Assembly (NCBI GenBank): GCA_001643675.2
Contig: LSRY02000039.1
Coordinates: 868,001-932,000, forward strand
Direction of reading: 5' to 3'
Source: Monocercomonoides exilis PA203
Lineage: Eukaryota > Protista > Preaxostyla
DNA: 64,000 nucleotides
The notes under the pieces are model-generated. The model saw nothing but the letters and a program-made list of their open reading frames with translations. It was not told the DNA's origin and searched no databases. Numbering within the stretch: position 1 is the first letter of the stretch; the number at the start of each line of letters is the position of its first letter. Shown here one piece after another: positions 7,214-30,361 of this stretch. Position numbers and translations under genes: made by a program.

Positions 7214-10200
7214 ATGAAGGCTGTGTTTTATATTTGTGCATTGATTATGCTCGGTGCCAAATGCAGGAATATGGAAGACATTGCTGAAAGACAAATTCAA
7301 CAAAAAATGAACGAGGAGATGCAGAAAGATTTGATCAGCATTGCAGATAAAATTTATGAGGATAACGATAATTTTTACAATTCAATGGCGAAAGTTATAA
7401 AACCAGCTGGCAATTGCATCTGCTGTATTCAAACAACTTTAAAAATCATCAACACCTCCTTGTGTGTGAACCATCTCAACATCATCCCCCTCACTGGTTG
7501 TCCGATCCTCACTTCCCAACACCACTCAGCTACCACTATCCTCTCCTCCACTTGCCAAGTCAACACAGCAACAAAATCTCCACTTTTCCTCTCTTTCCAT
7601 GCCCTCCTCTCCCTCACCAACTTCTCCCTCATCCCCCACCAACCTGCCATCCTCTCCTTCCCCCTCTTCTCCACCCCAAACAATCTCCCCTCAGATACCC
7701 ACTCCCCAATCCCTGTCTCCTTCTCCATCTCACACTCCTCCTTCTCCTCTTTCGTCTCCCTCATCCAGTCTTTCCTTTTTTCTCCTTTTTCCCTTTCTTC
7801 TCCATCCCCTTCTCCTTCATCTTCCTCATCCTCGTACTCATCCTCTTCTTTTCCTTTTCCTTCTCCTTCTCCTTCCCCTTCACCTCTCCATATCCATCTC
7901 AATCTCCATCTCTCAAACACCCTCTTCTCCAACATCTCCTCTCCTCAATCCCATTCATCTCTTCCATCCCTTCCTTCACATTCACTCAATCCTTTCATCT
8001 CTACCACTTCTTTCTCTTCTCTCTCTTCCACCAACATCAATACCAATACAATCCCCTCCTTCTCCCTGCACTCATCTCTTTTCATCCACTCAACCATCTT
8101 CCTCCACACTCACAACCCCATCGATGGAACCATTCTCCCTTCCATCAACAGCCCATCCACTTCTCTCTCTGCCTTCAATGCCTCTTTCCTTCGCCAAGCA
8201 CGCTCTTCTACAAACGATGCTAAGGTGTTTATCGGAACGGAATCTCAAAGAAAAACTCCTGGAAGATTGGATTCTTTTGATGCAAACAGCCATCGCTTCG
8301 AATGGTGCGAATGGAATGACACAAAAAGTGAAAATGAATATGGAGGAGCACTGAAAGTTAGTTGCACAAATGCCAATCTCACAATCACTTCTTGTTCGTT
8401 CAATAATTGTTTTTGCACAGGTAATGGCCATGGTGGAGCGTTGTATTGTGAAAGTTTATTGAAAATCAACATCACAAAATCTAATTTCACAAGTTGTTCT
8501 GCTGCATATGGAGGAGCTAATTGCATAGCTTGGCCACAACCAAATTCTGTTTATTCATTGTTAGAAAACAGAGTTGAAAATTGTTCAATAACAAGTTGGT
8601 GCGGAACTGGTTGGTATTTTGCGCTTGAAAGAACTCCAACAAATGCTCAATTCTTGTTTTTCAAATGTAAGTGCATTGCTAATACTGGTGGTGATTCCTC
8701 CGGTTCTTTAACATTTTATGACCCTCCTAGTAACAAACCGAGTCAGTTTTCAATCAATGATTGTCAGTTCATCGATAACAAATTGACTGCATCTTCCACG
8801 TATGGAGGTACAGCTATTTATTTTCATTTAACTTTTAATTGGATGAATGAAATAAAATTTATAACATTCTGCTTCTTTGATGGAAATTCCGCAACAAATG
8901 GAAGGGGAAACGATGTGTTCTTCAGTGGAAATAGCATCACCCAATCCCCATTCCAGCAATGTGGATCAACAACAGAATCAAAAAGAGTGTATAATAATGG
9001 ACAAGCTGACAATGCTGAATATAATGGCTGGCTTCCAATCATCAACCAGAACAAAATCGTTGCGAATGGTGGAAGTGATGTCGATGCTTGTGGCAAAACA
9101 CAGCAAAGCCCCTGTGCCACAGTGGAGTATGCTCTCGGATGCGTTGCTCCCTTTAGCGATGCCTCCCTTTTTCTTCTCGTCTCAACTTTCACTCCCATAA
9201 AGACTCTCACATTCCGCGCCCCAAATACAAAAATCACCGGAAATGTCACAGATACCACAATTATCTCCTCATATGGTATTCCTCAAACATCATCTTCTTC
9301 TTCTTCTTCACCTGATCCATCTGCCTCGTCTGCCCTCTTCCAACAAACCCAGGGCTCCCTCATAATTTCTGCCCTCGCCATCGCCCACAACTCCACAAAT
9401 CAAATCACCCCCATCCTCTTCCACATCTCCGAAAACTCCCCTTTCCTCAACCTCAACACAACAACCATCACTGGAACAACCTCCATAACTATAAAAACTC
9501 CCCTCTTCTTCCTCACTGCTGGCTCCCTCACCCTCAACCACACAGCAATCACTCATCTCACCCTCAACAGCCAAAGCATCTTCCACCTCATCTCCCTCAC
9601 CACTCCCCTTGCCCTCAACTCCTCCAACATCACTGACATCACCTCCACTGCCACTCCCGCCAGCTGCTTCCTCTCCTCTGCCACCTCCCCTGCCCTCTCC
9701 CTCTCCCTCACCAACTGCACCATCACCAACATCAACTCAGCACAGTTGAGCCAACAGACTGCCACCAATGGCGGGTGCATCTCATTCGCCTCATCTGCCT
9801 CTATTAACACATTTTCTGTGAGTGACACCACCTTCTCCACCTGCTCTGTGAGCGAGGATACAAGTTCTGGAGGAAGAGGCGGTGCTCTCATGATCGAGTA
9901 CAAGGATGATTCAGAAGTGTCGTCAACAACCTTTTCCATCACCAATATCGTGTTTTCAGCCAACAAGGCCAGCGTCGGAAGAGATGTGTATTTTGTGTGT
10001 GAATCATTTGTCGCTTCTGTGAAGGAACCCTTGTTTGCCTTCATGAGAAGCATCACTGAAAAAGATAATTCGGTTGTTGGACATGACAGAACAGAATCAT
10101 TCGGTGATTGGAATGTGGACTTGTTCATATTCTTTGATGGATTCTTTGATGATACAATATTTGTCGATGGAATATCTGGAGTGGAGAAGGTGTATTGCGG

Positions 10201-13200
10201 ATTGGAGAAGGCGCCATGCAAGAGCGTGAATTATGGGATTGAACATCTGAAGCGAACACAGAATACAAAAGAGGAGATTATTTTAAGTTCAAATTCGTTG
10301 ATGGCGGGGTGTTTGGATGTAGGGGAAATGTGTATAAAGGCAAAAACTGAGACAATTATGGAGATAGAATGCCAAAGTGATATAAGTGGCTCTGAAGAAG
10401 AATGTGTTCTGAAATCTTCATCGCTGACAGAAATGGAGTTCATTGGGATTGTTGTTCCACCAAGTTTTAACAAAACTGTTTCATCAGTGATCGAATCAAG
10501 CACTCGAAATGGTGAGTTGCACATGAAGAACTGTGGGAAGAGTGTGATTGGAGGGAAGCAAAACACGATTAGATTTTCCTTGATCAAATCAACTGGGAAG
10601 ATGGTTGAATTGGAGTTTGTCACTATTTCAGATATGAAATCATCAGTCATACTGTTTTCACTTTCACCTTCATCTGGAACTGTGAATGAAGGAGAGAGCG
10701 AAAGAGAATACAAAATGAAACTGTTGAATTGTTCAATGGAAGGATGCTTCTTTGAGAGTTCATTTGGAGAATCTCCATTGGAAATATTTTCTTCTGTTTT
10801 ATTTGAAAGCAACAACTTTTCAAACATTATGAACACTGGCAGTGGAGAAGGAGGCGTTGCTAAAGTGATATTGCAAGGGAATGAAGAATTTATGATGAAA
10901 ACAACAAATGCATCATTTTGTTCACTTTCATCAGGCAATGGAAAAGGAGGATTCTTGTATTTGGATTGTGAAAACTGTTTGGATGAAAAGCCTTTTCTTT
11001 TTGATATTGGAATAACTTTTGAGAATAACAAAGCAGCCATTGGAAAGAATGTGTTCATTTTGGGAAAGGATTTTAATTCTTCTGTGACAAACAATTCATT
11101 CAAATTTGATTATTCTGAAATGAAGGATGATGAAACTCTGTTTGTTGGGAATGATAGTCATCATTCAAACAAAGATTTATTCATGTTTCTGATTTCATAC
11201 AGCTCGTTTGAGATATTTATCTCATCAGATGGATTTGATGTTGCAAGATGTGGAAGTGAGGAAGAACCATGTTTCACAATGTGGAAAGGGATGGATAATA
11301 TGAAAAAGGGAGATGAAATGAAAACAATTCAGATTAAAGGATCAACTATCATTCGAGATTCATTCAACATGTCCAATAATCGGATCAAAAAGGATACGAA
11401 GATGGGAGAAGAAGATACAAAAGCAATATTGAATTTTGAAAAGTCAATTGGAAATCAACTGGAATATTTTATGGAAAATGATGTTAATCTTGAATTGTCC
11501 AACATCCAACTTCAACTGACATCGGGATTTGACAACTCAGCCAAAACAATTATTTCCAGTAAAATTGGAGAATTGGTGATAACTGGATGTTCATTCCATT
11601 TAGAGGCTGGAGTTAATAATGGATTTGATTGTGTGTTTGTGGATGCGATTGGAGGCAGTGTGGAAGTGAATGATTTGTCGATGGAATCGTGCAATATTCG
11701 AAACAGTATTTTTGCCATTCATGATTCTGGAATAACTTGCCATTTTGTGAATGTTCGAGTGGAATCGTTGAATGAAAGTGGGGGATGTCTTCTTCTTATC
11801 AAAGGAACTGAATCAACAACAAAGATAAATGAAGTTGGCGAAGAAATGAATCTCAAAATTGATAGTTCATTGTTTTCAGAGGTGAAGAGAAGTGACAATG
11901 GAGTGAGTATTTTGGAGTCGAAAAGTGAAAATAAGATTTGTTTGGTTGTGAATGAGAGCAACATCACAGAAGATAAAGCAGAATTGAGTGAAAAAGGAGG
12001 GGCAATATTCTTCACATTGGGTGCATCAGGATCAATGAAGATGATTGAAACAACAATCAGTCATTGCAGCTGCAGCAGCAACATGGGGAAAGGAGGAGGA
12101 GTGTATTTGTCAACAAAAGAAAGAGGAGAATTGAATTTCACATTTACGGGAATGAAATTCAGTTCAAACACAGCAAGAGTGGGAAATGACATTTATATTG
12201 AATGTTTCAACATCACATCGCAGATCAATAAAAGTCAATTTCAGTTTGATCTTCGAGAGAATCATTATTCGCAAATTAATGCAATATATGGGAGAGATGA
12301 ATGCGATTATCCAAATGATACAGATCTAATTGACTTTGTGACTATTCATCAGAGTGACACAGTCATTGTGAGTAGTGTGAATGGATCAGATGAAAAACAG
12401 TGTGGAACAAACACACTTCCATGTGCTTCAATTGATTATGGACTGATGCATCTGACTTCAGATTTCATGAGCCAAATGATTGTTGTTGAAGAGAGTGCGA
12501 TTGGCTGTGAGATAAATCTGGAAGAAATGAGTTTGAGCTCAAAAAGAAAGGTTGAATGCAAAGTTGAAATGAAATCTGAAATTGACAGAACAAAGGATTC
12601 TGTAATATCAACAACAGGAGAAGTTTCATTGCTGAGAGTCAGCTTTGTGTTTGATTCGAATTTTGTTTCTCAACATGAATCGTTGATATCACCAGAAGGA
12701 GGAATTCTTGAAATTGTGAATTGTTCATTCAGCTCAAAACAATTGAAGGAGGGAGTTAATGAAGATTTTGCAAACATTCCATTTCACATTTTCAACATGG
12801 CAAAGGGAGAATTACAACTTATGGAATGTTCAATGTCAAATCTAATTCTTCAAGAATCTGCATTGCATTTTTCATCACAACTTCAATCAGTCATTGATTC
12901 ATTAACAATTTTCAATTCAACAATTGCAACTCCTCTGATGAATATAAACGAATGTGGACAATTAACAATAAAGAATTTCAATACAGAAAATATCACAGTT
13001 GAACGAAATGAAGAAACATTGATATCTTGCTTGGCAATGAAAAAGACAGTGCAATTGACAAATTGCACAATGGGCGGAGTCGGTTCAAAGGCCACAAAAG
13101 GAAAATTGATGAAATTGGAGGATTGTTTGGATGTGAAAATTGATAGTTGCGTTTTTGATGGAAGTTTAAAAGAAATAAATGAGAAAAATTCAAATACAGA

Positions 13201-15160
13201 AGAGGAGATGTGCAGATGGGAAGGATCTCTTGTGGATGTTGTGAAGAGTTCTGTTTTCATGAAAGACACAACAATCTCGAATTCACAAGAAGGCGGAATA
13301 ACAATGAATGGAGGGACCATGACTATTAATGATGGAAGAATTGAGAACAATAATCCATCAATTAAAGGATATCCATCATTGAGAAGAAATATCATTTGTT
13401 CAGACTCAGGAACATTGAACGTGATGAGTTTGAAAGGAGGAGATGGAGTTTTGCCAAACACATCACTTTGGATGTTGAATAAAGGATGCAGTTTTGAAGG
13501 GATTGTTTCAGAAAGGGATTCATCGTTCTTCATTCCTGTTTTGGAGAGTGTGGAAGCAAAAGAAGAGACAAATAGAATGAAGCTGATATTCAAAGGAATT
13601 CTTCTTGTTCCATGCAATCTGTCATTCTCAGTTGTGAAGAGAAATGGAGAAGAAAAAGAGATCGAAAAGCATGATTTTGATTCAAATGGGTTTTTGTCAG
13701 AAAAAGAAGTCGAGGGAAGTGTGGCAAAAGATCTAATCAGCAGTTGTGGAGATAAAATCGAGGTGAGCGTTAATATTATATTTGGGAATGCAAAATCTCC
13801 TTCATCAACCGATTCTTTCATTCTGAAGAATAGAAGTGAGATTGAACAAAAAGGAGAAGAAAACATTGTTGAAAGTGGAAACAAGACTGCATCTTATTGG
13901 ATTATCATAGTTCTTGTGTTATCAATGTTATTTTTGATAGTTTTGATTGGATTTATTTTGTTTGTTATTCGATGGAGAAAAGCAAAGAAAGAGAACAAAG
14001 ATCTGAGAGAGATTGTGAATGATAACATCAGAAAAGATCCAAAGGCATTTGAGATGGTGACGATGGAGCCATCGCCCGAGGAGCAGTGGAGAAGAGCAGA
14101 GATGGAAGCTGAAAAAAAGAATGAAGAAAGAATCAAGAAGAGAGTGTATGAGAAAAACTTGGGGTATTCTGAGTCTTCAGAGCATCTTCTGTCTGAGAGT
14201 GGCTCAACAGAATACATCTTGGGAAGAGATTCAGACAAGATTCCTGAATGGGCATTGGAGAAGGTTGAGGAAGAAGAGATAAGGAAGAGAACGCATTCTC
14301 CTTCTATTTCATCCACTTCAACCACAGACACTTCAGACACAGATTCCACATTTGTTCGACCAGAGAGCATGTGTCCAACCACCTCATCAATGTCGAATCT
14401 GGTAGATGCAATGGCCTGCTCATCGCCTCATGAGAAGTTGATTGTTGATCTGAGGGATTCGATGTTCATGTTGTTGCATGGAAGGAATGAGAAGAAGGAG
14501 ATGGCGATAGGCACTCTGAAGGAAAGAGAGCAGACAGCTGCCCAGATCTTGTTCTGGGTGGCTAATCTCGCACTTCATTCGTTTGAAGATGATGAAGATG
14601 AAATACCATCATTGGCCAATCTGAGTCCCCACATCGTGCTGTTCTCAGGACACATGGTTATTTGCATTGCCCTCCACTCTGACTGTTCATCAGACTCAGA
14701 TTCATCTTCCATTTCATCCACTGTGACTATTGTTTCATCTGCAAGTGATGATGATGAAGAAGAAGATTCTCTGCCCTCATCTGCCTTTGAGGATTGTGAA
14801 GACAATCGATATGAGTGTTTGCGATGGAAGGCACCTGAATTGTTGATCAACAAGAAGATGGGAGCAACAGAAAAAACAGTCTCATTCTCGATTGGGATGA
14901 TGCTGTGGGAGTGCCTGATTCTGAAGGTTCCGTTTGGGGAATATGAGGCAGAGGTGGCAGGGCAGAAGATCGTGAATGGAGAGATGCCGGAGATGGGGGA
15001 AACGGGATCAGAGGCTTTGATGGAGTTGGGAAATCGATGTCTGTGTGTGCAGTGGGAAGAGAGGCCGAGTCTTCGAAGTGTGAAGCGAGAATTGATTGGG
15101 CATTGTGAAAGTTGCTCGACAATGATGACAGCGACAGATGCGATTGATTTTGATTATTGA
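7214..15160 (+). CDS. Giant type I membrane protein: GGA/beta-helix-like repeat ectodomain, one TM segment, cytoplasmic degenerate TK/TKL-like kinase C-lobe
   Basis: Single 2693-aa ORF; likely start MKAVFYICALIMLG at 7214 (signal-like). Repeated GGAL/GKGG..F..N.A..G and CGxxxxPC modules; TM YWIIIVLVLSMLFLIVLIGFILFVI-RWRK; RWKAPELL, SFSIGMMLWE, VPF, ERPS near the C-terminus. Confidence 0.88.
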   Translation: MKAVFYICALIMLGAKCRNMEDIAERQIQQKMNEEMQKDLISIADKIYEDNDNFYNSMAKVIKPAGNCICCIQTTLKIINTSLCVNHLNIIPLTGCPILTSQHHSATTILSSTCQVNTATKSPLFLSFHALLSLTNFSLIPHQPAILSFPLFSTPNNLPSDTHSPIPVSFSISHSSFSSFVSLIQSFLFSPFSLSSPSPSPSSSSSSYSSSSFPFPSPSPSPSPLHIHLNLHLSNTLFSNISSPQSHSSLPSLPSHSLNPFISTTSFSSLSSTNINTNTIPSFSLHSSLFIHSTIFLHTHNPIDGTILPSINSPSTSLSAFNASFLRQARSSTNDAKVFIGTESQRKTPGRLDSFDANSHRFEWCEWNDTKSENEYGGALKVSCTNANLTITSCSFNNCFCTGNGHGGALYCESLLKINITKSNFTSCSAAYGGANCIAWPQPNSVYSLLENRVENCSITSWCGTGWYFALERTPTNAQFLFFKCKCIANTGGDSSGSLTFYDPPSNKPSQFSINDCQFIDNKLTASSTYGGTAIYFHLTFNWMNEIKFITFCFFDGNSATNGRGNDVFFSGNSITQSPFQQCGSTTESKRVYNNGQADNAEYNGWLPIINQNKIVANGGSDVDACGKTQQSPCATVEYALGCVAPFSDASLFLLVSTFTPIKTLTFRAPNTKITGNVTDTTIISSYGIPQTSSSSSSSPDPSASSALFQQTQGSLIISALAIAHNSTNQITPILFHISENSPFLNLNTTTITGTTSITIKTPLFFLTAGSLTLNHTAITHLTLNSQSIFHLISLTTPLALNSSNITDITSTATPASCFLSSATSPALSLSLTNCTITNINSAQLSQQTATNGGCISFASSASINTFSVSDTTFSTCSVSEDTSSGGRGGALMIEYKDDSEVSSTTFSITNIVFSANKASVGRDVYFVCESFVASVKEPLFAFMRSITEKDNSVVGHDRTESFGDWNVDLFIFFDGFFDDTIFVDGISGVEKVYCGLEKAPCKSVNYGIEHLKRTQNTKEEIILSSNSLMAGCLDVGEMCIKAKTETIMEIECQSDISGSEEECVLKSSSLTEMEFIGIVVPPSFNKTVSSVIESSTRNGELHMKNCGKSVIGGKQNTIRFSLIKSTGKMVELEFVTISDMKSSVILFSLSPSSGTVNEGESEREYKMKLLNCSMEGCFFESSFGESPLEIFSSVLFESNNFSNIMNTGSGEGGVAKVILQGNEEFMMKTTNASFCSLSSGNGKGGFLYLDCENCLDEKPFLFDIGITFENNKAAIGKNVFILGKDFNSSVTNNSFKFDYSEMKDDETLFVGNDSHHSNKDLFMFLISYSSFEIFISSDGFDVARCGSEEEPCFTMWKGMDNMKKGDEMKTIQIKGSTIIRDSFNMSNNRIKKDTKMGEEDTKAILNFEKSIGNQLEYFMENDVNLELSNIQLQLTSGFDNSAKTIISSKIGELVITGCSFHLEAGVNNGFDCVFVDAIGGSVEVNDLSMESCNIRNSIFAIHDSGITCHFVNVRVESLNESGGCLLLIKGTESTTKINEVGEEMNLKIDSSLFSEVKRSDNGVSILESKSENKICLVVNESNITEDKAELSEKGGAIFFTLGASGSMKMIETTISHCSCSSNMGKGGGVYLSTKERGELNFTFTGMKFSSNTARVGNDIYIECFNITSQINKSQFQFDLRENHYSQINAIYGRDECDYPNDTDLIDFVTIHQSDTVIVSSVNGSDEKQCGTNTLPCASIDYGLMHLTSDFMSQMIVVEESAIGCEINLEEMSLSSKRKVECKVEMKSEIDRTKDSVISTTGEVSLLRVSFVFDSNFVSQHESLISPEGGILEIVNCSFSSKQLKEGVNEDFANIPFHIFNMAKGELQLMECSMSNLILQESALHFSSQLQSVIDSLTIFNSTIATPLMNINECGQLTIKNFNTENITVERNEETLISCLAMKKTVQLTNCTMGGVGSKATKGKLMKLEDCLDVKIDSCVFDGSLKEINEKNSNTEEEMCRWEGSLVDVVKSSVFMKDTTISNSQEGGITMNGGTMTINDGRIENNNPSIKGYPSLRRNIICSDSGTLNVMSLKGGDGVLPNTSLWMLNKGCSFEGIVSERDSSFFIPVLESVEAKEETNRMKLIFKGILLVPCNLSFSVVKRNGEEKEIEKHDFDSNGFLSEKEVEGSVAKDLISSCGDKIEVSVNIIFGNAKSPSSTDSFILKNRSEIEQKGEENIVESGNKTASYWIIIVLVLSMLFLIVLIGFILFVIRWRKAKKENKDLREIVNDNIRKDPKAFEMVTMEPSPEEQWRRAEMEAEKKNEERIKKRVYEKNLGYSESSEHLLSESGSTEYILGRDSDKIPEWALEKVEEEEIRKRTHSPSISSTSTTDTSDTDSTFVRPESMCPTTSSMSNLVDAMACSSPHEKLIVDLRDSMFMLLHGRNEKKEMAIGTLKEREQTAAQILFWVANLALHSFEDDEDEIPSLANLSPHIVLFSGHMVICIALHSDCSSDSDSSSISSTVTIVSSASDDDEEEDSLPSSAFEDCEDNRYECLRWKAPELLINKKMGATEKTVSFSIGMMLWECLILKVPFGEYEAEVAGQKIVNGEMPEMGETGSEALMELGNRCLCVQWEERPSLRSVKRELIGHCESCSTMMTATDAIDFDY

Positions 15161-17399: not shown

Positions 17400-17930
17400 A
17401 AGTTTAACGAATTACATCTAACTTTTGAAAATTGTTCATACAAATGCTGAAAGCTTTTGCAATTGAAACCAGTTATTATTTCATCCGCTATTGCAAATCT
17501 TTTGATAACAATATCCTAATGCGCTTTTTATTTTACTTAAAAAATGAATGAAAAAAATTAAAAATTGCTTGTGTGCAGAAAAATATGATAATAACTTATA
17601 AAGATAAAATGGAAAAGTCTCACTCAAAAGTTGACTCCATTCATGTATAAGCTAATGCAAGTTGATTTTTCTATTTTTAAAATTGGTCTAACCAAGGACA
17701 GAAAAAAAAAACATATGCCAACTGCATCCAAAAACCAAACTTCAATTTTTGTTTTATTTGAAATGAAAATCATCAAAGAAAGAAAAACGATTTCACCCAT
17801 CTTTCAATGAGTGAATGAAAAAAGTTAAGCATAAATGTTACTTTTTAAACAAATGCTTTTGACTATTTTTGTGGTAAAAAAAACTAAACAGTCAAAGAAG
17901 GAAATTCTATCTGACTCTAATTCCTTATAT

Positions 17931-20900
17931 CTATTGCTGCTCTTCGTGCTTCTCCGAAACAGAAGGTGATGCATTCGAAAAAAATGAGAAAAAGTCGTTT
18001 GCTCCAATCATATTGGTGCTTGAAGCAGAAGAAGAGGTAGAAGAAGAAGAAGAAGAAGAAGAAGAAGAAGAAGAAGAAGAAGAAGAAGGTAAAGCTCCTT
18101 CATTCGAAGCAGAAGTGCTCAAAAACGATGCCATAAAATCATCGCTTGAAGATGCATTTGAGCTGATTGTTGATTGAGAGGTGGCTGGCTGAGAAGAGCC
18201 CGAAAGAAAAGCAGAAAAATCAAAAGCAGAAGAAGAAGAAGAAGAGTTCTGGTTGGTTTTTTGCTGAGAAGAAGCAGAAGATGGCATTGGAGAGCCAGAT
18301 GAAGATTGTGAAAGTGCAGGAGATGACGAAAGAGACGATTGAGGAGAAGATGAAGGAGAAGGAGAAGAGGAAGGAGTCGCAAAGAGCGAAAGCAAGGAAC
18401 TAAAATCAGAAGAAGATTGAGGAGAAGACTGAGGAGAAGATTGAAGAGGAGAAGATTGAAGCGAAGTGGAAGAAGGAGAAGAGGAAGGCTTGGCTGTTGT
18501 TGATGGAGTTCCAAACAGATCGAGAATGTCAATAATTGGCGAATCTGCAGCAGGCGGATGATGGCTGGGTGAGGCATGCAAGACATCTTCAGCAGCAGAT
18601 GAAGAAGAAGAAGCAGTTGCATCAATGGGGATTGAAATCTCTGCTTTCTTTGAAGAATCCTGTGCGGTGGATAAAACAGTTGCGAGTTGTGGCGAGCTCA
18701 CTTCAGCTGCTTCTGCTTCGGAAGAAGAAGAAGAAACAGAAAGAGATGCTGCAACTGCTGTTGATTGACCTGATGCAGAAGCACCTTCATGAATTACCAA
18801 TGAATCGCTTTGTGTGTTGCTATCGTTTCTGCTCTCAATTTCATCTTTATCTTTCTCTCTCTTTTCATCGTCATCAGCAGCAGAAGCAGCAGCTCCTGGT
18901 TGCACATTCAATTGCATTGTATCAATTGTTTCCTTCTCTTCTGGCTCCTTTTGCTCTTCGTCTGTCTTTCTCTTCTCGCTCTCTTCTTCTCCTGGTCCGT
19001 CTGACTTCTTCATCTCAGTGTATTTTCCTTCTTCAGAAGCGAAGCCAGCTTCAGCCTCCATCAACATTTTGTCTTCGACTGTTGTGATTTCTTTCTCTTT
19101 TTCTGCTTCTTCTTCTGCTTCTGTCTTTTTCAGCAATTGCGGTTGCAATGCTTCTTCACCTGTGTTCACATTCATTTCTTTTTGATTATTCGACACTTCA
19201 ACTTCTTGATGATCTTTTTCTTTCTCTTTCTCATCATTTTCTTCATTTTCTTCAACCATCTTGATTTCTTCTTTCGTTACTTCTTCACTTTTCTCTTCAA
19301 AATTGCCTTTCTCATCCTTTTCCTCATGCTTCACTTCTTCCTTCTTTTCCTCTCCTTCTCCTTCTTTCTCCTTCTCCTTCTCCTCTTCTTTCTCCTTCTC
19401 CTTCTCTTCATCTTTCTCTTTCTCTTTCGTCGTCTGCTCAGCAAACCCGAAGAAATTGAATGCATCCGGCTCAGAAGCTGCACTGTTTGTTCCTTGTTTC
19501 TCCGTCTCTGGCGAAGCAACAGAGTCAAAAGTGAATGAAAATCCAAACACTGGCTGTTGAGATGCATGTGCTTCATGTGATTCATGCGATGCTTCAGATG
19601 CAGCTGAAAGTTCGCTTTTAGAGGTTTCTTTGGAGATATCGACTTCCTCTTCTTTCTTGTCTGACACTTCTTTTTCTTTTTCTTCTCCTTCTTCTCCTTC
19701 TCTTCTCTTCTCTTCTTCTTCTTCAATATGTTGTTTGTCTTCACTTTCTCCTTCTCCCTCTCTTTCGATTTCTCTTTCGCTTTCTCTTTCTTCCTTCTCC
19801 TTTTCTGCATTATCATTATTCTTCTCTTCATTGTTTGAAATTTGTTCACTTGCATTGTTAACAACTCCATCTGAGCTGTTTTCTTTCGATGTTGCCTGAA
19901 GAAATGCAAAACCAGTAAAAGATGCCTTATTTTCAGTTGGGTTTCTTTGAATTTCAGTTGTTTCCTCTTTCTTTTCAATCTCTTCTGTCTTTTCTGTCTT
20001 TTCTTCTTTCTCCTCTTTTTCTATTTTACCGCTTTCTTCTTCTACTTTCTTCTCTTCTTCTTCTTTCTTCTCTTCTCCTTTCTCATTATTCTCATTCTTC
20101 TGCACTTCAGGCGAAGAGAACGAGAAAAAGTCAAATCCTGTGCTGATTGCTGCCTTTTGTGCGTCTTCATTGCTTTTGCTTTCATTCTGTGAAGGTTGAT
20201 CAAAAGAGAACGAGAAAAAGAAAGAAGTATTTTGTTGAGCGGAAGATTCAGAATTCGTCTCCAATGTTAGTTTTTCTGCTTCTTGTTCTGGTTTTTCTGA
20301 TAATTGATCTGCTTTCGATTCGTTTTTAACCTCATTTTCAGTCTGAACAGCTGATGCTGATGATGTTGCTTCTGTTTTATCTTTGTTTGTTTCTTCTTCT
20401 CCTTTGTTTGCTGGTATTGTTACGTTCTCTTCTTTGTTTTCTTCTTTTTCCTCTTTTTCTGTTATTTCTTCATTCTTTTCTTTCGCTTCTTCTTCTGCTT
20501 CGGTTTCTTCTATGCTCTTCTTTTCTTTCTCTTTCTCTTTCTCCTTTTCCTTCTCTTCCTCTTCCTTTTTCTCTCCTCCTTCCTCTTTCATCTTTGTTGT
20601 CTGCGCAGAAAAAGAGAAAAAGCCAAAGTCATTCGAAACAGACGGAGCATTCGAAGCAACCTCTTTTTTATCTGCTTCCTCTTTTATTCCTTCTTTTTCT
20701 CCTTCTTTTTCTCCTTCTGTGTCTTCTTTGGTTTCTTTTGCTTCTTTAATGTCTTCTTTCTCTTTTTCTTTTTCTTCTTTTCCCTCTTTCTTCTCCTCCT
20801 CTTTCTCCTCTTTCTCCTCTTCTTCCTTGTTTTCTTCTGTTTTCTCTTCTTTTTCCTTTGGTGTCTGAGCAGTTGAAGAGAAAGTGAAGAAATCAAAGCC

Positions 20901-21141
20901 AAAAGATGAATTTTGTGTGTGAATTTCCTCTTTCTCTTTTCCTTCTTCTTTCTCTTTCTCTTTTTCCCCTTCTTTTTCTTTTTCTTCTTTTACTTTTTCT
21001 TCTTCTTCTCCTTTTGCATCTTTTTGGTTCAGTTGAGGTTGTGGTGAAGAAGATGTTGTTTCGGAAGGGAATGAGAAAGAGAATGAGAAAGCAGAAGAAG
21101 AAGAAGAAGGAGAGGAAGAGGAAGAGGAAGAAGAGGAAGAG

Positions 21142-21179
<38 letters not shown>

Positions 21180-24100
21180 TGATGATGATGAAATATTTTC
21201 TGAAGAAAAAGAAGGGGAGGAGAAGGAGAAGGAGAAGGAAGAAGAAGGTGAATGAGATGGTGTTGAGGAAGGGGTGGAGAAGAAGTCTGCTGAAAAGAAA
21301 GGAGAAGAAGAAGGAGAAGGAGAAAATGATGATGATGTTGTTGTTGTTGTTGTTGTTGAATCTTTAGCTTTGCTTTTATCTTCGTCTTCTATTGGTTCTT
21401 TTTCTTTTTCCTCCTTCTTTTCTTTTTCTTCTTTCTTTTCTTCTTTCTTTTCTTCTTTCTTTTCTTCTTTCTTTTCTTCTTTCTTTTCTTCTTTCTTTTC
21501 TTCTTTCTTTTCTTCTTTCTTTTCTTCTTTCTTTTCTTCCTCTTCTTTTGTGTTTGCTTCTTCTTTCTCTTCTTTTTCAATTTCTTTCTTCTCCTCTTTC
21601 TTTTCATCTTCTTTCTCTTCTTTCTTTTCCTCCTTTTCCTCTGTTTTTATCTCTTTCTCTTCTGTTCCTGTTGAGAAAGAGAAGAAGTTAAATGCAGCAG
21701 CTCCATTTGTCAAATCTGAAGAAGAAGAAGAATTTTCCTTTTCTTTCTCTTCTTCTTTCTCTTTCTCTTCTTCTTTCTCTTCCTCTTCTTCTTTCTTCTC
21801 TTCTTCTTTCTCTTTATTTACTTCTTCTTTTTCCTCATTTCCTTCTTTTTCTTCTTTTCCTTCCTTTTCTTCTTTTTCCTCTTTTTCTTTGTTTTCTTTG
21901 TTTTCTTTGTTTTCTTCTTTTTCTTTGTTTCCTTCCTTCTTCTCTTCTGTTTGTGGAGCACTTGTTGAGAAAGAGAAGAAATCAAATCCAGAAAAAGTTG
22001 CATTTTGAGAAGAAGATTCAGTTTTCTCTTCTTTTTCATTGGAATTTGTGTCTTTTGAAGAAGAAGAAGGAGGAGGAGAAGGAGAAGAAGAGAAAGAGAA
22101 AGAGGAAAATGACGATGAAACATTATCAGAAGAAGAAGAAGAAGAAGAAGTGTTATCAGAAGAGGAGGAGGAGGAGAAGGAGAAAGAAGAAGATGGTGAA
22201 TGGGAAGGAGAAGAAGAGGAAGAAGAGGAAGAAGGTGTTGAAGATGCAAGTGAAAAGAAACCTGAGCTGAAAAAGTCACTTTTTGTGGTGTTTGTATCTT
22301 CTTTTGGCTTTTCTGTGATTTCTTTCTTTTCTTCCTCTTTTTCTTCTTTCTCTCTTTCTTCTTCTTTTTCTTCTTCTTCCTCTTCTTTCTCTCTTTTTTC
22401 TTCTTTTGTTTCTGTTTTCTCTTTCTCTTTCTCTTCGTACTTTTCTTCTTCCTCCTCAGCTTCTTCTTCCTCCTCTTCTTCTTCTGCCTCTTCTTCCTCT
22501 TCCTCCTCTTCATCTTCTTTCTTTTCCTCTTCTTTCTCCTTTTCCTTTTCCTTTACAACTTTCTCCTTCTCCTTCTCATCATCATCTTCTTCTTCTGTCT
22601 TATTGTTTGTTGATTGTTGTGTTTGTGGAAGAGAAGAAGAAGCAGAAGAAGAAGAAGAAGCGCCAAAGAATGAGAAGGCATTGAAAGAAGAAGAAGATGA
22701 TGATGATGATGATGATGATGTTGTTGTTGTTGTTGTTGTTGTATCAGAAGGGAAAGAGAAGGAGAAAGAAGAAGAAGAGGTTGTAGAAGAAGAAGAGGAG
22801 GAGGGAGAAGCAGAAGCAGAAGAAGAAGAAGAAGGTGTTGTTGAGAAGAAATCAAACGCAAATGAGTTTGTTTGTGAATGAATTGGTTGTTGTTCTTTCT
22901 CTTTCTCTTCTTTCTTCTCTTCCTCTTTCTCTCCTTCCTTCTTCTCCTTCTCTTCCTTCTCTTCCTTTTTCTCTTCTTCTTCTTCTTCTTCTTCTTCTTC
23001 CTTCTTCTTCTCTGTTGTTGGAGGAGGTGATGTTGGTTGAACAGATTGCGAAAAATCAAATGCAAATGCTTTTCCTGCTTCCACATTTGTTTCTTCTTTC
23101 TTCTTTTCTTCCTCTTCCTCCTTCTCCTTCTCCTTCTCCTCTTCCTCCTTCTCCTTCTCCTTCTCCTCTTTCTCCTTCTCCTTCTCCTTCTTTCTAGCTT
23201 TTTCTCTCTCTTCCTCTTCGTCTGTTGATGATTCATTGAGACTTAAATCATCTTTGTCCACAAAATCAAACTCATCTTCATCGACTTCATTCAAATTGTC
23301 TTTCTTATTCTTCTTCTTCTCTTTCTCTTTCATCATCATCTTCTTCATCGATTCAGGAGATAAAGGAGAAGGCGGGCGAGGCGCTTCTGATTTCTTTTCC
23401 TTCTTTTCTTTTCCTTCTTTTGCTTCTTCTGAAGATAAAGGCATTGGCTTATCATTTAATTCTTCTTCTTCTTCTTCTTCTTTATTTTTCTCTGTTTCAT
23501 TTTTAGTTTCTGCTTCAGAAGGAGAAGATTGAGTGATGGCTGGTCTGCGGGTGATGGTGTGTTTGGCTAAGAGAGAGGCTGGCGAAAATGAAAAAAAAGA
23601 GAGAAAGAAGAAGATGATTGAAGAGAAGGAAAGAAATTAATTAATTAATTAATTAATTAATAAATAAATAAATAAATAAATAAATAATGAGAAAATGAAG
23701 ATATTATGGCAAAGGGAAAGATTGAAAATAAAGATGAAGATGAAGCATGAAGGTGAATAAATGAATGAATAAAATAAATATGAAATATGAAACACAAAAT
23801 AAGCAAGAAAGAAAAACATTAAACAAAATAAAGTGTTTTTTCTTTTTGCATACGAGGGGTGAACGGGGCGAGTGAAGTGAGGTTGAGTCTGATGGAAGTG
23901 ATTGATGTGAAGACTTTACAGACATTGAATATCACTCTATCTAATGTGCTGTGGATGAAAGAGAGAAAATGAATGGAATAAATATATATAGATAAATATA
24001 TGGATATATATGGATATTCATATGATAGAGAGAGGGAGGGAAACAATATTGGAAAAGAGAAAGATTTTCACAATGAAAAGGAAATAAAATAAAAACATAA

Positions 24101-26853
24101 CAAATTATAAACAGAAAATAAAAAATAAATTGTTGAATTGGTCGATAATGTAAATGCACATGTAGATTTCATATTAAATAAATAAATAAATAAATCTTTT
24201 CATAAAAGAAAGAAACATACAAAGAAGGGTGCAGAGAATTCAAGATGTGTATGCGTGGATCATTCGTGGCACGAGGTACATAAACATCTGACACAAATAT
24301 GTCTCTATGGAATCGCAGATAACAAGGGGAAATGAATGAGAAAGAGATGTGATGATTAAGATTTCAATGAGGAGGTTAAAAAAAAATAGAAAATGAAAAA
24401 AATAAATAAAGTTTTGAATAAAATTCATGATGACAACAATTGGGCAAATAAAAGAAAGAGAAAAAGAAAAAAAGAAAAATCAATACGCAATCACAAGTAA
24501 TATCAAGAAAGCAAATTCACCAATCATGTTCAATCGCACACTTCTCTGCAATTGGCTCGAACATCTTCAGAACAGGCTCCATTTCCTTCACAGGATCAGT
24601 CGTCTCCATCAAGCAGCTGATAAACACTGTGATATACTTCTTAGAAGAGGAAGAAGAAGAAGAAGAAGAAATCGAGTTGTTTGTGGGCATTGGAGAGTCA
24701 GAGGCAGAAAGGGAAGCTGATTGAGAAGAGGAAAGATGCTTCGGCCGGCTGAATGAAACGTAAACAGCTGATTTTCGGTTCAGTTGCTTTGGCGGCACGA
24801 TGATCAGCCCAGTTTCAGAGGATGCTCCTTTCACGGGGAGATCTGAAGAGAGAAAGGGGAGAAGAGAAAGAGAGAGAGAAAGAAAGAAAGAAAGAAAAGA
24901 GAGAGAGAAAGAGATAGAGAGAGAGAGAGAAAGAGAAAGAGATAGAGATAGAGAATGATTAAAAGAATAGAAGGCAGAGGGAAAAAAGGTTTGTTAAAAT
25001 GAAAAGAAATGGAATTTAATGATAATAAGAATAACAACAATAAAATGAAGAAGAAGAAGAAGAAGAAGAAGAAGAAGAAGAATTGAAAATAACAAAATTC
25101 ATCCAAATAATATCAACATAAATATTAACAAAGCAAATAAAAAAATAAAGTCAATAAATATGATTTTGCACACGGTTGAGGAGGAGGACGGCTGTGATGA
25201 TTTCTCCATTGTTCTGGCAGAGATGGCGAGCATAAGAGGGATGGGCAACGATGTGGCTGCAGTGGATGAACTGAAGGACAGAATTGATGAATAAAAAAAA
25301 GAAAGAGAGAGAAAGATTGAAAGAGAAAAAGAGAAAGAAATAAAAAGAAAGAAAGAGAGAAAGAGAAAGAGAGAGAAAGAGAGAAAGAAAGAGAGAGAGA
25401 GAGAGAGAGAGAAATCGTTTTCAGTTATTTTAAAAGGCTTACTCCAAAACACAACCCACAAACCGATCCTTCTGTTGCCACGCCGAACAAGACGCTTTTC
25501 TTGTCGCATACAATTCGAACATCAGTTTGGCCAACAGAAATAGAAGCTCCATTCATCAGAGACACCCTTTTTGGATGAAGAAAGATGGAGAAGAAAGATA
25601 TGAAAATTAATTTATTAAATAAATAAAAATAGAAAATGTGGTCAACAATGAGGAAATTAAAGCAAATTGATGAGGAAAAGAAAATGGAAAGACAATGAAA
25701 AGATAAATTGAAAAGAAATAATTCGGACAATTATTAATTGAAGAAATATCAAATGTTATCTTTATTAAAATATACATCCGCTTTTTCTTTGATCTCTTTT
25801 TCTTTTTAATTTTTCTTTCTTTGTCAAATAAAACAAACTGTTGAGCACGCTGTAAAAGAGCTGCATTTCCACCGAGTGGATAGAGATACGGGTGTTGGTC
25901 TGAACATATCGAGCATTCCAGCATGCGCCGTATAGACGACATCAGAGGCAAAGCCGGATGCTCAAGAAATCTGTTAATCACAAGCAAATTGACAGAGAGA
26001 TTGATAAATATTTAGGAGCATTCATAAAGAATAAAAATTAAAAGTTAAAGTTAAAGTACAAACTGCTCATTTTCTGCTGATCCAAGTCCATATGTCAAAA
26101 AATCGCAAGACTCTGCATCAATTTTGAAATGTTTAAGTACATCTTTAAATAGCATCTCGTTAAGTCGTAAATTTCCGTAAGTAGATGGATTGCTTTCATC
26201 AAATTGAGACAGAAACAAAAAAAACTTTCTCAATTTTCCTTTGTTTGTTAATCCAGTTAGACCTGTTTGCACCATCTGTGCTTCAGAAAATGGAACCTTG
26301 AAAAATAATTTAAAATATCAAATCCAAAACAGAAAACAAAATACATACGGGCACAATTTTTCCCTTGTGAAAGCAAAATAAGCTATCAACTTTTTCACAT
26401 TCCAATGAAGGAGAAATTCCCAAAGCAGCCAAAAATGCAGCAGAATATCCTTTTTAAAAAAATCATAATTTAATCTTTAGAAATTCAGCCCACATACCAT
26501 ATGTCGAAAGAAATTTTGGCTCCTGTTCTATCATAAGCTGTCTTCGCTCTGATATGTGACTTGAAGGCCTGGATTTTGTGTGACAAAATAAAAACTTAAT
26601 TTATTGATTACACAACAAAAACAATGTCGCACATCAATTTGTCGAGCCTTATAGGTGAAACTTCACATCCTAAATTGATTGATTTCTCTAACTGCAACAC
26701 TTTTAATCCCTGTGCAGAAAGCATTGATGTTATGAGTGTCTCTTTCAATCCGCTTCCTGTAAGATATTTCAGCATAAATTCCTCGAAATCAAACAAACAT
26801 TAAAGAATTATATGTATCAAACCCAAGACAATTACATCATAACTGTCTATCAT
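17931..26853 (-). CDS. Divergent Rab GDP-dissociation inhibitor (GDI/REP family) protein fused to a ~1,880-aa acidic/Ser-rich disordered tail; 12 exons, 2339 aa
   Basis: Exons 26823-26853, 26633-26756, 26498-26568, 26349-26449, 26064-26296, 25839-25970, 25464-25566, 25174-25270, 24542-24842, 24221-24304, 23854-23948, 17931-23578; all GT-AG and phase-consistent (total 7020 nt). GDI motifs: YDVIVLGSGLKE, PKFL, PYLYPL, HPSY, IIVPPKQLNRKSAVYV, FVSDVYVP. Confidence 0.82.
21429..21538. repeat. Coding 12-bp tandem repeat encoding (EEKK)~9
   Basis: Unit TTCTTTCTTTTC repeated ~9 times inside the last exon of the GDI-like gene. Confidence 0.9.
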
Positions 26854-27039: not shown

Positions 27040-30000
27040 ATGCAGAAAGTTGAGAATTCAACATTAAAGGAAGATATATTTCCAAAGGATAAAGATTGTT
27101 TATTTAGATTTTCGATTCTCAATGAAAGAAGTTCTTTTTCAAAAAATATCGATGCTGAAACTCTTTCAGTGAAGATAAAATATGAAGATATCATATTGAA
27201 TGAAAATTCTTTTTACGAAGTTTTTTCTTATGAAGAACCCGCAGGTAATGTTCTTTGCAAACAATCAAGGAAAATATTTTATGATTGTTTCTTTGTTGAA
27301 TACTCATGTGATAGTTGTTTTTCGAACTTGGATCAGATTCTAACTTTCTGTCAAAGATTTCATTTAAACATTGACTCTGATGTATGTTTTCATTTTATCA
27401 ACACGTTTTCTGGAGAATTTCTTTTGCTTTTAGGATTCGTGGAGAATAATTATCAATGTCATTTCTGGCCTTGATATTTTGGATAGAAATTGCATGGTTC
27501 ATGGATTATTAGCTAGTAATACTGTTTTAGTCAAAGATGATGAAGTGAAGCTTTGGAAACATAATATAACTCCGTATCTTTCTTTTGAGGCACAACATCG
27601 TTTGAGAAATGAAAATATGGAATATTTCAGTCCAGAAACAAAGACAAAAGGAATAAACAGCATATCATCAGACGTATACAGCTTGGGTGTAATTATTTCG
27701 AAAATATTTGATTTCACCGCCTTCTGTGACGAGAATGATAGGAAGGATATGATGGAATTGCGTGAGGCGTGTTTGGAGACAGATCCTGCAAAGAGAATTA
27801 CGCTCGATGATTTGATTGAGCACCGCCTGATCGCAAAGCTTCTTCCATCAGAAAATTGCAATGAAATGTATCAGACATCACATTCACATGGAAGAGAAGA
27901 AGAACAAGAAGAATCAGAGGAAAGAAAAGAAAATGAGTCAGATGATGTTCTGAATGTAGATTTCGCAGCAATTGTGGCTCATTCGCTGAATGCTGGACGC
28001 TTCTCCTCTTTAAATGAAGCTTCTTCTTCTTCTTCTTCTTCCTGCTCCTCCTCTTCTTCCTCTTCTTCCTCTTCTTCTTCATCATCTTCCTCCTCTTCCT
28101 CCTCTTCCTCCTCTTCGATTGCCAAGCGCTATCAATCAGATCTGCCTCTTTCTATTCTCAATTTCAAAGCGGCTGTCAAAGAATATGCATATCAAATGAC
28201 TGAGCTTGCAGATGTTGGCAGACTCCTCGATTCACAAAGGAAGGAGATACCTGAAAGAAAAGAGAAGAAAGAAGAAGAAGAGAAAGAGAAAGAGAAAGAA
28301 GAAGAGAAGAAAGAAACGCCCTTTCAGATCTCATCCACTCCTTCTGCACATCCAAAATCCATTGCTCCTTCCCCCTCTTCAAATGCACAAATAAGAGGAG
28401 TTAGACATAACATAAGAGGAATGTTACAGCCAACAGTTTTTCCAAAAGTGCTGCCGAAGGCAAAGCCAAAGGCTGTTCCTAAGGCTTCTCCAAAGGTATT
28501 TCCTTCATCTTTTCCAAAAACTTATCCAAAAACTTGTCCAAAGGCAAATCCAAAGGTAAATCCAAAGGCAATTCCAAAAGCAACACAAAGTTTGATTGTT
28601 CGCTCTAACACATCGACTGGGATTCGAATAAATTCTGTCCCAAAAACCAGAATTTGTGTACGTGGAACACATGTCAATAGTATTGTTGGATATCCTTATT
28701 CTAATTCTTTTCATTCTTCTTCTTCTTCTTCTTCTTCTTCTTCTTCTTCTTCTTCTTCTTCTTCTTCTTCCTCTTCTACCTCTTCCAAAGACCCTTCATC
28801 AACTAAGCCCTATCTCGTCCTCTTCAGCCCCACACGCAAAGGTGAAGAGGTGATTGACTCGTGCGTGGCCTATGCAAACTGTCCTGCTCCTGCTCCTATT
28901 CCGCGAGGAAACAGAGAGGTTGGCTCGACCACCACCATTTGTGTGAAGAGGGGCACACCACATCTGCTGAACACATCCCTACAGCAGTTCGCTCAGAGAT
29001 GCAATGGCACGCTTTTCTACAAGTTAAAAGTTGAATATGTGAGAGAGGAAGGAGTGGACTATGGAGGAGTGAGGAAGGAGTGGTGCAGTGCTGTGCTGGA
29101 GGAGACTGTGAAACCCTGTTTTGGCTTGTTTGATGCTGTGAGAGGGGAGGATGGGAGGCAGACGCTGATGGTGTCGTCTGCTTGTGGCACACGGGCCTTG
29201 TATTATTCTCGTATTTGTTCTCGAGCTTTGAAGCTTGCTTCTTCGTTTCCTGTTTGCTCCTCCTCCTCCTCTTCTTCTTCTTCTTCACCTCCTCCTCCTC
29301 CTCCTCATCTTCAACCTCTTTCTCCCTTCCTCTCTGCTCATGCATGCTACTATGCATTCGTCGGTTCCCTCTTGGCCAAAGTGCTGATTGATGGCTTCAA
29401 CGTGGACTTTCCTCTGTCAGATGTGCTGTTGAAGCACATGCTGGGCCAGCCACTGCACATCAGTGATTTGTGGAGTGTGGATGCAGAAATGGCGAGGCAG
29501 CTGGAGAAGCTGGAAGACTACTCGGAGGAGGAGATGAAGGCACTGGACTTGAACTTCACGATCACGGAGGAAGTGATGGAGGGAGGGGGGAAGGAAAAGA
29601 AGGAGGAGAGAGAGAAAGAGGAGAATGAGAATGAAGATAAGAAAATAAAAGCTAACGAAATGAACATTGCACAAAAGGATCAAAAAGAAAGTGATGTTTC
29701 TTCAAAGTCAATGGTATCATCTCATCAAGCCGTTGGAGACGAGCAGCCAAACATGCGTGTGCGGAGAGCAGTTGAGATTGAGCTTATTCCTGGCGGGTCC
29801 TCCATTCCTGTTACTTGTGCAAACAGGAGAGAATTCATCGCCCTGACTGCACATCGCATCCTTTTTGGTGGTGAAACAAAGCAGAAGAACACAAAGACAC
29901 TGGTAGATGCATTCCACTCTGCACTACCCCAGCGCATGCTCGCCAGCCTCACAGTTCCCCAGTTGCGGCTGCTTCTGTGCGGACAGGGCAGGATCGATGT

Positions 30001-30361
30001 GGAGGACTGGAAGAAGAACACAATCTATAGAGACGGCCTGTCACGAAGATCGCCAATTGCCAAGTGGTTTTGGGAGGTGGTGGAAGAATCCAGCGAGCTA
30101 TGGAGAAAAAAACTACTGTTTTTTGTGACCTGCTTTTCTTCCCCACCGATTGGAGGGTTTTCCTGTCTTGACAGGACTCAAACTTCATATTCCCGTCGTT
30201 TTACTCTTTCATTGAACAAAGGAGTTGAATGTGATCGTCTACCTGTTGCTCATACTTGCTTCTTCAATCTTGAACTTCCACGGTATCATACGAAACAACA
30301 ACTTAAATGTAAATTGCAAATGGCTGTAAATCATTGTAAAGATGGGTTTTTGATTCAGTGA
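27040..30361 (+). CDS. N-terminal pseudokinase plus C-terminal HECT E3 ubiquitin ligase
   Basis: Exon 27040-27381, 52-nt intron 27382-27433, exon 27434-30361. Kinase-like VHGLLASNTVLV, YFSPE, SDVYSLGVI, CLETDPAKRIT. HECT motifs EEGVDYGGVRKEW, ELIPGG, IDVEDW, KWFWEVV, LLFFVT, LPVAHTCFFNLELPRY (catalytic Cys present). Confidence 0.9.

Follow-up and report, generated by a model that had tools for sequence, protein, structure and literature searches.

Rab GDI binds prenylated Rabs in the GDP-bound state and removes them from membranes. It is a soluble protein of about 430-500 amino acids (aa) without a long extension, as in bovine alpha-GDI (1D5T/1GND) and yeast Gdi1 (1UKV), and it belongs to the same superfamily as REP-1/CHM (1VG0, 1LTX). 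Two other known classes serve for comparison below: the ER/K single alpha-helix (SAH) spacers, which are long isolated helices rich in E and K, and the FxFG nucleoporin domains, in which dense Phe-based repeats are found with charged spacers. Here we analyse a GDI-like gene of Monocercomonoides exilis PA203, in which a divergent GDI-fold head is predicted to be spliced in frame to a long acidic tail. The gene lies on the minus strand at positions 17,931 to 26,853 of a window of contig LSRY02000039.1 (the whole 64-kb stretch of DNA analysed), and all positions are given in this window. The Oxford Nanopore Technologies (ONT) assembly of M. exilis comprises 82,301,135 bp in 101 contigs (Treitli et al. 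2021).

A sequence-only reading of this stretch had proposed that eleven GDI exons chain in phase to a low-complexity open reading frame (ORF) of 1837 aa, giving 2339 aa in total. A codon walk, exon by exon, reproduced this chain. The first of eleven GDI-like exons opens with the ATG at 26853 and the last ends at 23854; their borders are GT..AG, their phases are consistent, and together they make up a head of 457 aa. When exon 12 is added, the sole stop is at the very end of the chain, and the total is 2,339 aa with the public GTTTGT donor of exon 7, or 2346 aa with an alternative donor 21 nucleotides (nt) downstream. The tail ORF (1837 aa, 17931-23444, minus strand) is indeed open upstream as had been claimed: its frame continues to 23636, past the AG at 23580-23579, and the exon can be read from 23578. 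The head was searched either exon by exon or as the public partial model MONOS_2648. The features of the gene, all on the minus strand, are as follows.

26823..26853, minus strand: exon 1; start ATG at 26853, reads MIDSYDVIVL and ends in a split Gly; equals the start of public MONOS_2648.
26633..26756, minus strand: exon 2; SCR1 region, with EKS..NLGC replacing DRN.YYGG; Pfam GDI 8.3e-5 and alignment; in MONOS_2648.
26498..26568, minus strand: exon 3; from the codon walk; in MONOS_2648.
26349..26449, minus strand: exon 4; from the codon walk; in MONOS_2648.
26064..26296, minus strand: exon 5; domain II region, the most conserved part of the head; Pfam GDI 2e-12; orthologue fragments 42-53% identical.
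25839..25970, minus strand: exon 6; SCR3B region with PYLYPLGGNAALLQRAQQ; in MONOS_2648.
25464..25566, minus strand: exon 7; ends at the public GTTTGT donor; with a GTAAGC donor, also in frame, it would reach 25443 (+7 aa).
25174..25270, minus strand: exon 8; its donor is read through in the 454-era MONOS_2648 to a stop in intron 8.
24542..24842, minus strand: exon 9; holds a Ser-rich insert of about 30 aa that bovine GDI 308-376 lacks; Pfam GDI 3.6e-9 and PDB alignment.
24221..24304, minus strand: exon 10; its first residue is present in the published model; aligns to GDIs.
23854..23948, minus strand: exon 11; final helix of the GDI fold, where homology ends; a by-eye reading, as MAFFT misplaced this short piece.
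23579..23853, minus strand: putative intron 11; 275 nt, GTATGC...CCAG; retention would bring in a stop at 23821-23819.
17931..23578, minus strand: exon 12; 1,881 whole codons and the stop (17931-17933); acidic low-complexity tail.
23445..23576, minus strand: open, coding-like stretch; 44 codons from the acceptor up to where the tail ORF has its first ATG; GC content 0.39, against 0.22 in the intron.
17979..23066, minus strand: span of the alternating-Phe clusters; 18 clusters (FAFDFF, FGFDFFTF, FSFSFSF, FNFFSF and others), each with S/T/N/Q linker flanks.
17753..17759, minus strand: candidate poly(A) signal AAATAAA, 172 nt past the tail stop; motif as defined in Treitli 2021.

Junction 10/11 was placed by homology, a GTATGT donor and phase only.

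The sequence signals at the head-tail junction support an in-frame splice well. The donor, C followed by GTATGC at 23853, coincides with the end of GDI homology, and introns 3, 4 and 10 have the related GTATGT. The acceptor AG at 23580-23579 is the first AG among those listed back to 23700 (120 nt upstream) and is preceded by a run rich in T; its phase matches that of the donor, and a second in-frame AG lies 12 nt beyond the acceptor. The jump of GC content from 0.22 to 0.39 coincides with this AG rather than with the first ATG, which comes 134 nt later. Over the 44 codons between the two the frame stays open and encodes a Glu run; the chance of meeting no stop there was 0.02-0.16 in shuffles. 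The base composition of intron 11 (G 4%, T 56%) falls within that of introns 7-10 (G 3-11%, T 52-58%), while its flanks have G 12-14% and T 33-41%. Treitli 2021 defined AAUAAA and AAAUAA as the poly(A) motifs of M. exilis, the real signals occurring in a U-rich context, and neither motif is found in intron 11. Removal of intron 11 is a prediction from these signals, and we consider it probable that head and tail are spliced in frame into one fused product.

On its profile matches, the head is a true member of the GDI family, of the GDI type and not of the REP type. Exons 1-8 jointly score 168.5 bits against the Pfam GDI profile (PF00996; 2.5e-49 over 303 profile positions), far above the curated cut-off of 23 for the GDI/REP superfamily, and exons 2, 5 and 9 also match singly (46.8 bits for exon 5 and 36.1 bits for exon 9). 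The match to bovine GDI (7.5e-35) is much stronger than that to REP-1 (2e-9). Residues 3-295 of the head correspond to GDI 5-305 with small gaps only, no large insertion of the REP type is needed, and exon 9 covers bovine 308-376, so that the head is collinear with Rab GDI over the whole fold. The N-terminal DVIVLGxG and the blocks PYLYP, IIVPxxQxNRK and ETTDPxKE are kept, and the length of about 457 aa is also that of a GDI. On the other hand, the head differs from Rab GDI in its branch length, in the Ser-rich insertion of exon 9 and, if spliced, in the tail of 1,881 aa.

Three loci of the GDI family are found in the genome: a canonical GDI (MONOS_13593), a weak REP-like gene, and the divergent head gene. 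MONOS_13593, which is likely the housekeeping GDI of M. exilis, scores 570.7 Pfam bits compared with 168.5 for the head, and identity between the two in exon 5 is 35%. By eye, two or more intron positions look common to both (after the ..VI.LG exon and after ..NEQ). The canonical protein itself (G000:C8:87285-88910) ends in a Ser/Ala/Glu-rich extension of about 50 aa, a low-complexity tail on a small scale. The REP-like locus (G000:C30:1009079-1009711) is separate from the head gene and even more divergent. Phylogeny against GDI and REP, which the sequence-only reading had called for, yielded an unresolved star for the tree of GDIs and the REP-like gene, with a long terminal branch for the head, 2.72 compared with a median of 0.49. 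By this measure the head would evolve about 5 times faster than canonical GDIs.

The divergence reaches the Rab-binding platform, that is, the YYGG of SCR1 and Glu233 and Arg240 of SCR3B, which the head does not keep. Bovine Y39, E233, R240, T248 and M250, which we take from the mutagenesis literature to be needed for Rab binding, align with L, A, Q, S and S, respectively, and the YY of YYGG has become NL. Among the aligned canonical GDIs, Arg240 is found in 9/9, Glu233 in 7/9 and the second Tyr in 7/8, and MONOS_13593 keeps YYGG, Glu and Arg. With the Rab-binding residues replaced in this alignment, the head is not to be read as a "Rab GDI". The description of the domain as Rab-GDI-like stands for family membership, but not for the canonical Rab-binding residues.

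The divergent paralogue is also seen outside this genome. Environmental or run assemblies yielded three orthologue fragments, which show 42-53% identity to the head in exon 5 and share with it the paralogue-specific strings VPFSE, KLRKLF and HFKI, from which we conclude that the paralogue is older than the species. One of them, a 1410-nt Logan contig from SRR13490893, has the derived EKS, not DRN, ahead of the YYGG site, as the head does, and this common change argues, at the level of sequence, for a remodelled function rather than decay. The fragment reads EKSGYIGEG where canonical GDIs read DRN.YYGGE, and its exons 4 and 5 are contiguous, without intron 4. The contigs of the three fragments, of 0.8-1.6 kb, are too short to reveal a tail. 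No orthologous loci were found in the metagenome scan, and no paralogue of the tail was found in the genome.

The GDI-like head is an already known, annotated M. exilis gene. The exon 5 search among 1.84 billion representatives retrieved MONOS_2648, a 454-era annotation of 304 aa that consists of exons 1-8 and then runs into intron 8. Table S3 of Treitli 2021 lists MONOS_2648fu12816, which by the naming rule of that paper is a fusion of MONOS_2648 and MONOS_12816. Its first 400 residues correspond to exons 1-9 and extend into exon 10, and over this part of the entry junctions 8/9 and 9/10 are confirmed. Junctions 1-10 match the two public proteins MONOS_2648 and MONOS_2648fu12816. Intron 8 (24843-25173, minus strand) contains (CTT)11 and long (CT)n runs exactly where MONOS_2648 ended, and these repeats are likely the cause of the former split into two models. 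A word search with exon 9 among proteins of 87-276 aa gave no match, and the gene is not mentioned in the portion of the Novak 2023 supplements covered. For the tail the situation is different. The exact 1,837-aa ORF was not found in the protein collection, the start of the tail was not found among public proteins of 83-262 aa by word search, and the head-tail junction was not found in any public gene model seen; the ORF at 17931-23578 is apparently unannotated. Simple and low-complexity repeats were masked ahead of de novo gene prediction in Treitli 2021, and this is probably why the tail was missed.

The tail of 1,881 residues is made up of E (24%), S (19%), K (14%) and F (4.8%) among others, contains no Trp and no Cys, and has a net charge of -250; no Pfam domain was found in it. 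Eighteen charged blocks of 15-104 aa, composed almost only of E and K, account for 39% of the residues and alternate with Ser-rich linkers that bear the 18 alternating-Phe clusters. These clusters contain 69 of the 90 Phe, and FxF occurs 37 times where about 4 would be expected from the Phe content by our own arithmetic, an enrichment of about 8-fold. Neighbouring clusters lie 23 to about 400 aa apart. AlphaFold2 runs without an alignment gave lone helices of 67, 83 and 86 aa for the modelled charged blocks, with a predicted local distance difference test (pLDDT) score of about 70-90. The remainder of the tail has pLDDT < 50, and the last 366 residues show no hidden fold. The tail had been described as disordered, which is right only in part: the charged blocks, at least those modelled, are predicted to be helical.

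When compared to the ER/K SAH spacers, the charged blocks are similar in being E/K segments predicted as isolated helices of 67-86 aa, these being single-sequence predictions. They are different in that Glu greatly exceeds Lys, and some blocks are of the form (KKEE)n, without the usual i/i+4 salt-bridge pattern. The resemblance to FxFG nucleoporins lies in Phe clusters with charged or polar spacers over a long region without a folded domain. However, FxFG and GLFG are both absent from the tail, its 1,881 aa contain no more than 6 FG dipeptides, its clusters are about 10 times sparser, and it lacks a nucleoporin anchor domain; membership of the FG-nucleoporins was rejected on the motif counts. 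An endocytic or adaptor array of short motifs was rejected likewise, with FxDxF, DP[FW], NPF, the clathrin box and the gamma-ear motif all at 0; the FFAT core is also absent from the tail, and D[LI][LF] gives two overlapping matches only, in one DILDLF.

For the locus as a whole we lean towards a single gene, in which removal of intron 11 would join the GDI-fold head to the tail in a protein of about 2,339 aa (about 260 kDa). The spliced product would be too large for a Rab GDI. If intron 11 is retained, the last donor is read through to ...PRMQKEKTLYFV and the stop at 23821-23819, and the product of about 468 aa would fit; the earlier claim that retention of the last intron gives a normal-sized GDI is thus correct as a reading of the frame.

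Several points weigh against the fused protein and the design that we suggest for it. AlphaFold2 without an alignment tends toward helices for E/K-rich sequence. Low-complexity EK/S stretches are common in this genome, and most of the tail may owe its existence to mutational drift and not to design. Among the 1.84 billion representatives, no member of the GDI family was found to carry a tail of this kind, and the orthologues are short fragments only. The first 120 residues of the tail were not found by word search in any public protein of 1045-3327 aa, although sequences from the new annotation are in the collection as NCBI proteins (KAH7826345.1, the canonical GDI, is one), and so the published fused gene model probably ends before the tail. 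This is indirect evidence, and it counts mildly against the fusion because the annotators of the published model had long-read cDNA (Treitli 2021).

The alternative that survives best, although we regard it as unlikely, is that two genes are present: a GDI of about 468 aa that ends at 23821-23819, and a separate protein of 1,837 aa that starts at the ATG at 23444 and has its own promoter in the 375-nt spacer. The public annotation of the head gene seems to be without the tail, as this would require, but the exact 1,837-aa ORF is likewise unannotated. The read-through ending gives a normal GDI length, and an AAATAAA at 23487, which is 332 nt past the read-through stop, lies at about the mean length of a 3' untranslated region (UTR); its context, however, is purine-rich and not U-rich. 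From the read-through stop to the tail ATG there are 375 nt, which is too small for a 3'UTR, a promoter and a 5'UTR of the published mean sizes (3'UTR 312 nt and 5'UTR 62 nt, with a mean intergenic distance of 1855 nt; Treitli 2021). Coding-like composition and the open frame begin at the AG, 134 nt ahead of the ATG from which the second gene would start, and a protein without any folded domain would be unusual.

It is very improbable, in our judgement, that the tail ORF is unexpressed, being a frame derived from trinucleotide repeats in a 3' region and kept open by purine-rich composition and in-frame slippage. The 47 overlapping tandem-repeat rows in the tail, the richness of this genome in such stretches and the seeming absence of the tail from both public annotations, as far as the searches reached, would agree with it. 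However, the repeats are old and most rows are imperfect (62-90% matches), and synonymous codons are mixed, with all six Ser codons in use and TTT/TTC at 45/45. Owing to the mixed codon use and the imperfect repeats, we account for the tail as a maintained frame and not a fresh microsatellite. Moreover, 1,901 codons are open compared with at most about 280 aa in the other frames or on the opposite strand, and the 18 Phe clusters, with their FxF enrichment, are not simple repeats. Scarcely credible is an FG-nucleoporin-like or endocytic-adaptor-like array read by karyopherins, AP-2 or AP-1 ears, clathrin or VAP: hydrophobic clusters do alternate with charged spacers, superficially as in FxFG domains, and one DILDLF is present, but the tested motif classes are at 0, FG dipeptides are too few, and the clusters are as irregularly spaced as given above.

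Low-complexity stretches appear to be a habit of this genome, as the neighbour of the REP-like gene indicates. At that locus (G000:C30:1007579-1011211, minus strand; PF00996 6.4e-7), the next ORF on the same strand has long EK-rich and poly-Ser stretches.

Returning to the single fused gene, we propose how it may have arisen and act. The head would have descended from a Rab GDI by fast divergence in which the residues that grip the Rab switch regions were replaced, and it is probably no longer a general Rab recycler. Its role could instead be that of a specialised module that binds a divergent prenylated GTPase or a membrane. Removal of the 275-nt intron 23853-23579 would join the 457-aa head to the single 5.6-kb exon, while retention would leave a GDI-sized product. 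The tail would then be a polyanionic chain of rods and linkers, in which the 18 charged blocks act as stiff spacers and the Ser-rich linkers display the 18 alternating-Phe clusters as weak multivalent "stickers". In such a protein the remodelled GDI fold would anchor a long, stiff, acidic chain with many weak aromatic contacts, and as a speculation the fused protein is a candidate tether or scaffold, as the sequence-only reading had suggested. A very divergent clade of Rab7-like GTPases has been reported only from M. exilis (Karnkowska 2019), and it is equally speculative to name this clade as the partner of the divergent head. The fullest version of the proposal, in which the paralogue, shared with relatives seen only as fragmentary environmental contigs, was converted into the head of a 260-kDa polyanionic tether, recognises a lineage-specific GTPase, and carries the Phe clusters as a new multivalent array, we regard as doubtful.

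Both neighbours of the gene are on the plus strand. The 3' end of the GDI-like gene converges on the 3' end of ORF 7079-15160, which encodes 2,693 aa. A transmembrane stretch is predicted close to its C-terminal third, and its end resembles a kinase. Part of its first 400 residues is a CT-rich, intron-like translation, and for this reason the real gene is probably a spliced one; the protein collection does not contain this exact ORF. The 5' end diverges from ORF 27479-30361, in which a protein-kinase domain, present as its C-terminal half (PF07714, residues 3-79), is followed by a complete HECT ubiquitin-ligase domain (PF00632, 1.3e-68). On these matches it would be a kinase-HECT combination. 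The plus-strand ORF 27040-27474 upstream of it has no Pfam match.

As a regulator of membrane traffic, GDI ranks with the most conserved and the most uniform in architecture. Should the splice prove false, the locus is an annotated divergent GDI paralogue beside a low-complexity ORF, which is an ordinary result. If the splice is real, a housekeeping chaperone fold would have been recruited as the head of a scaffold, with a tail four times the size of the head and the Rab-gripping residues lost. There would also be an annotation gap, with a 5.6-kb open frame missed when the published genome was annotated, and should tails of this sort be common in the genome, the proteome of this model amitochondriate (mitochondrion-lacking) eukaryote would be under-described.

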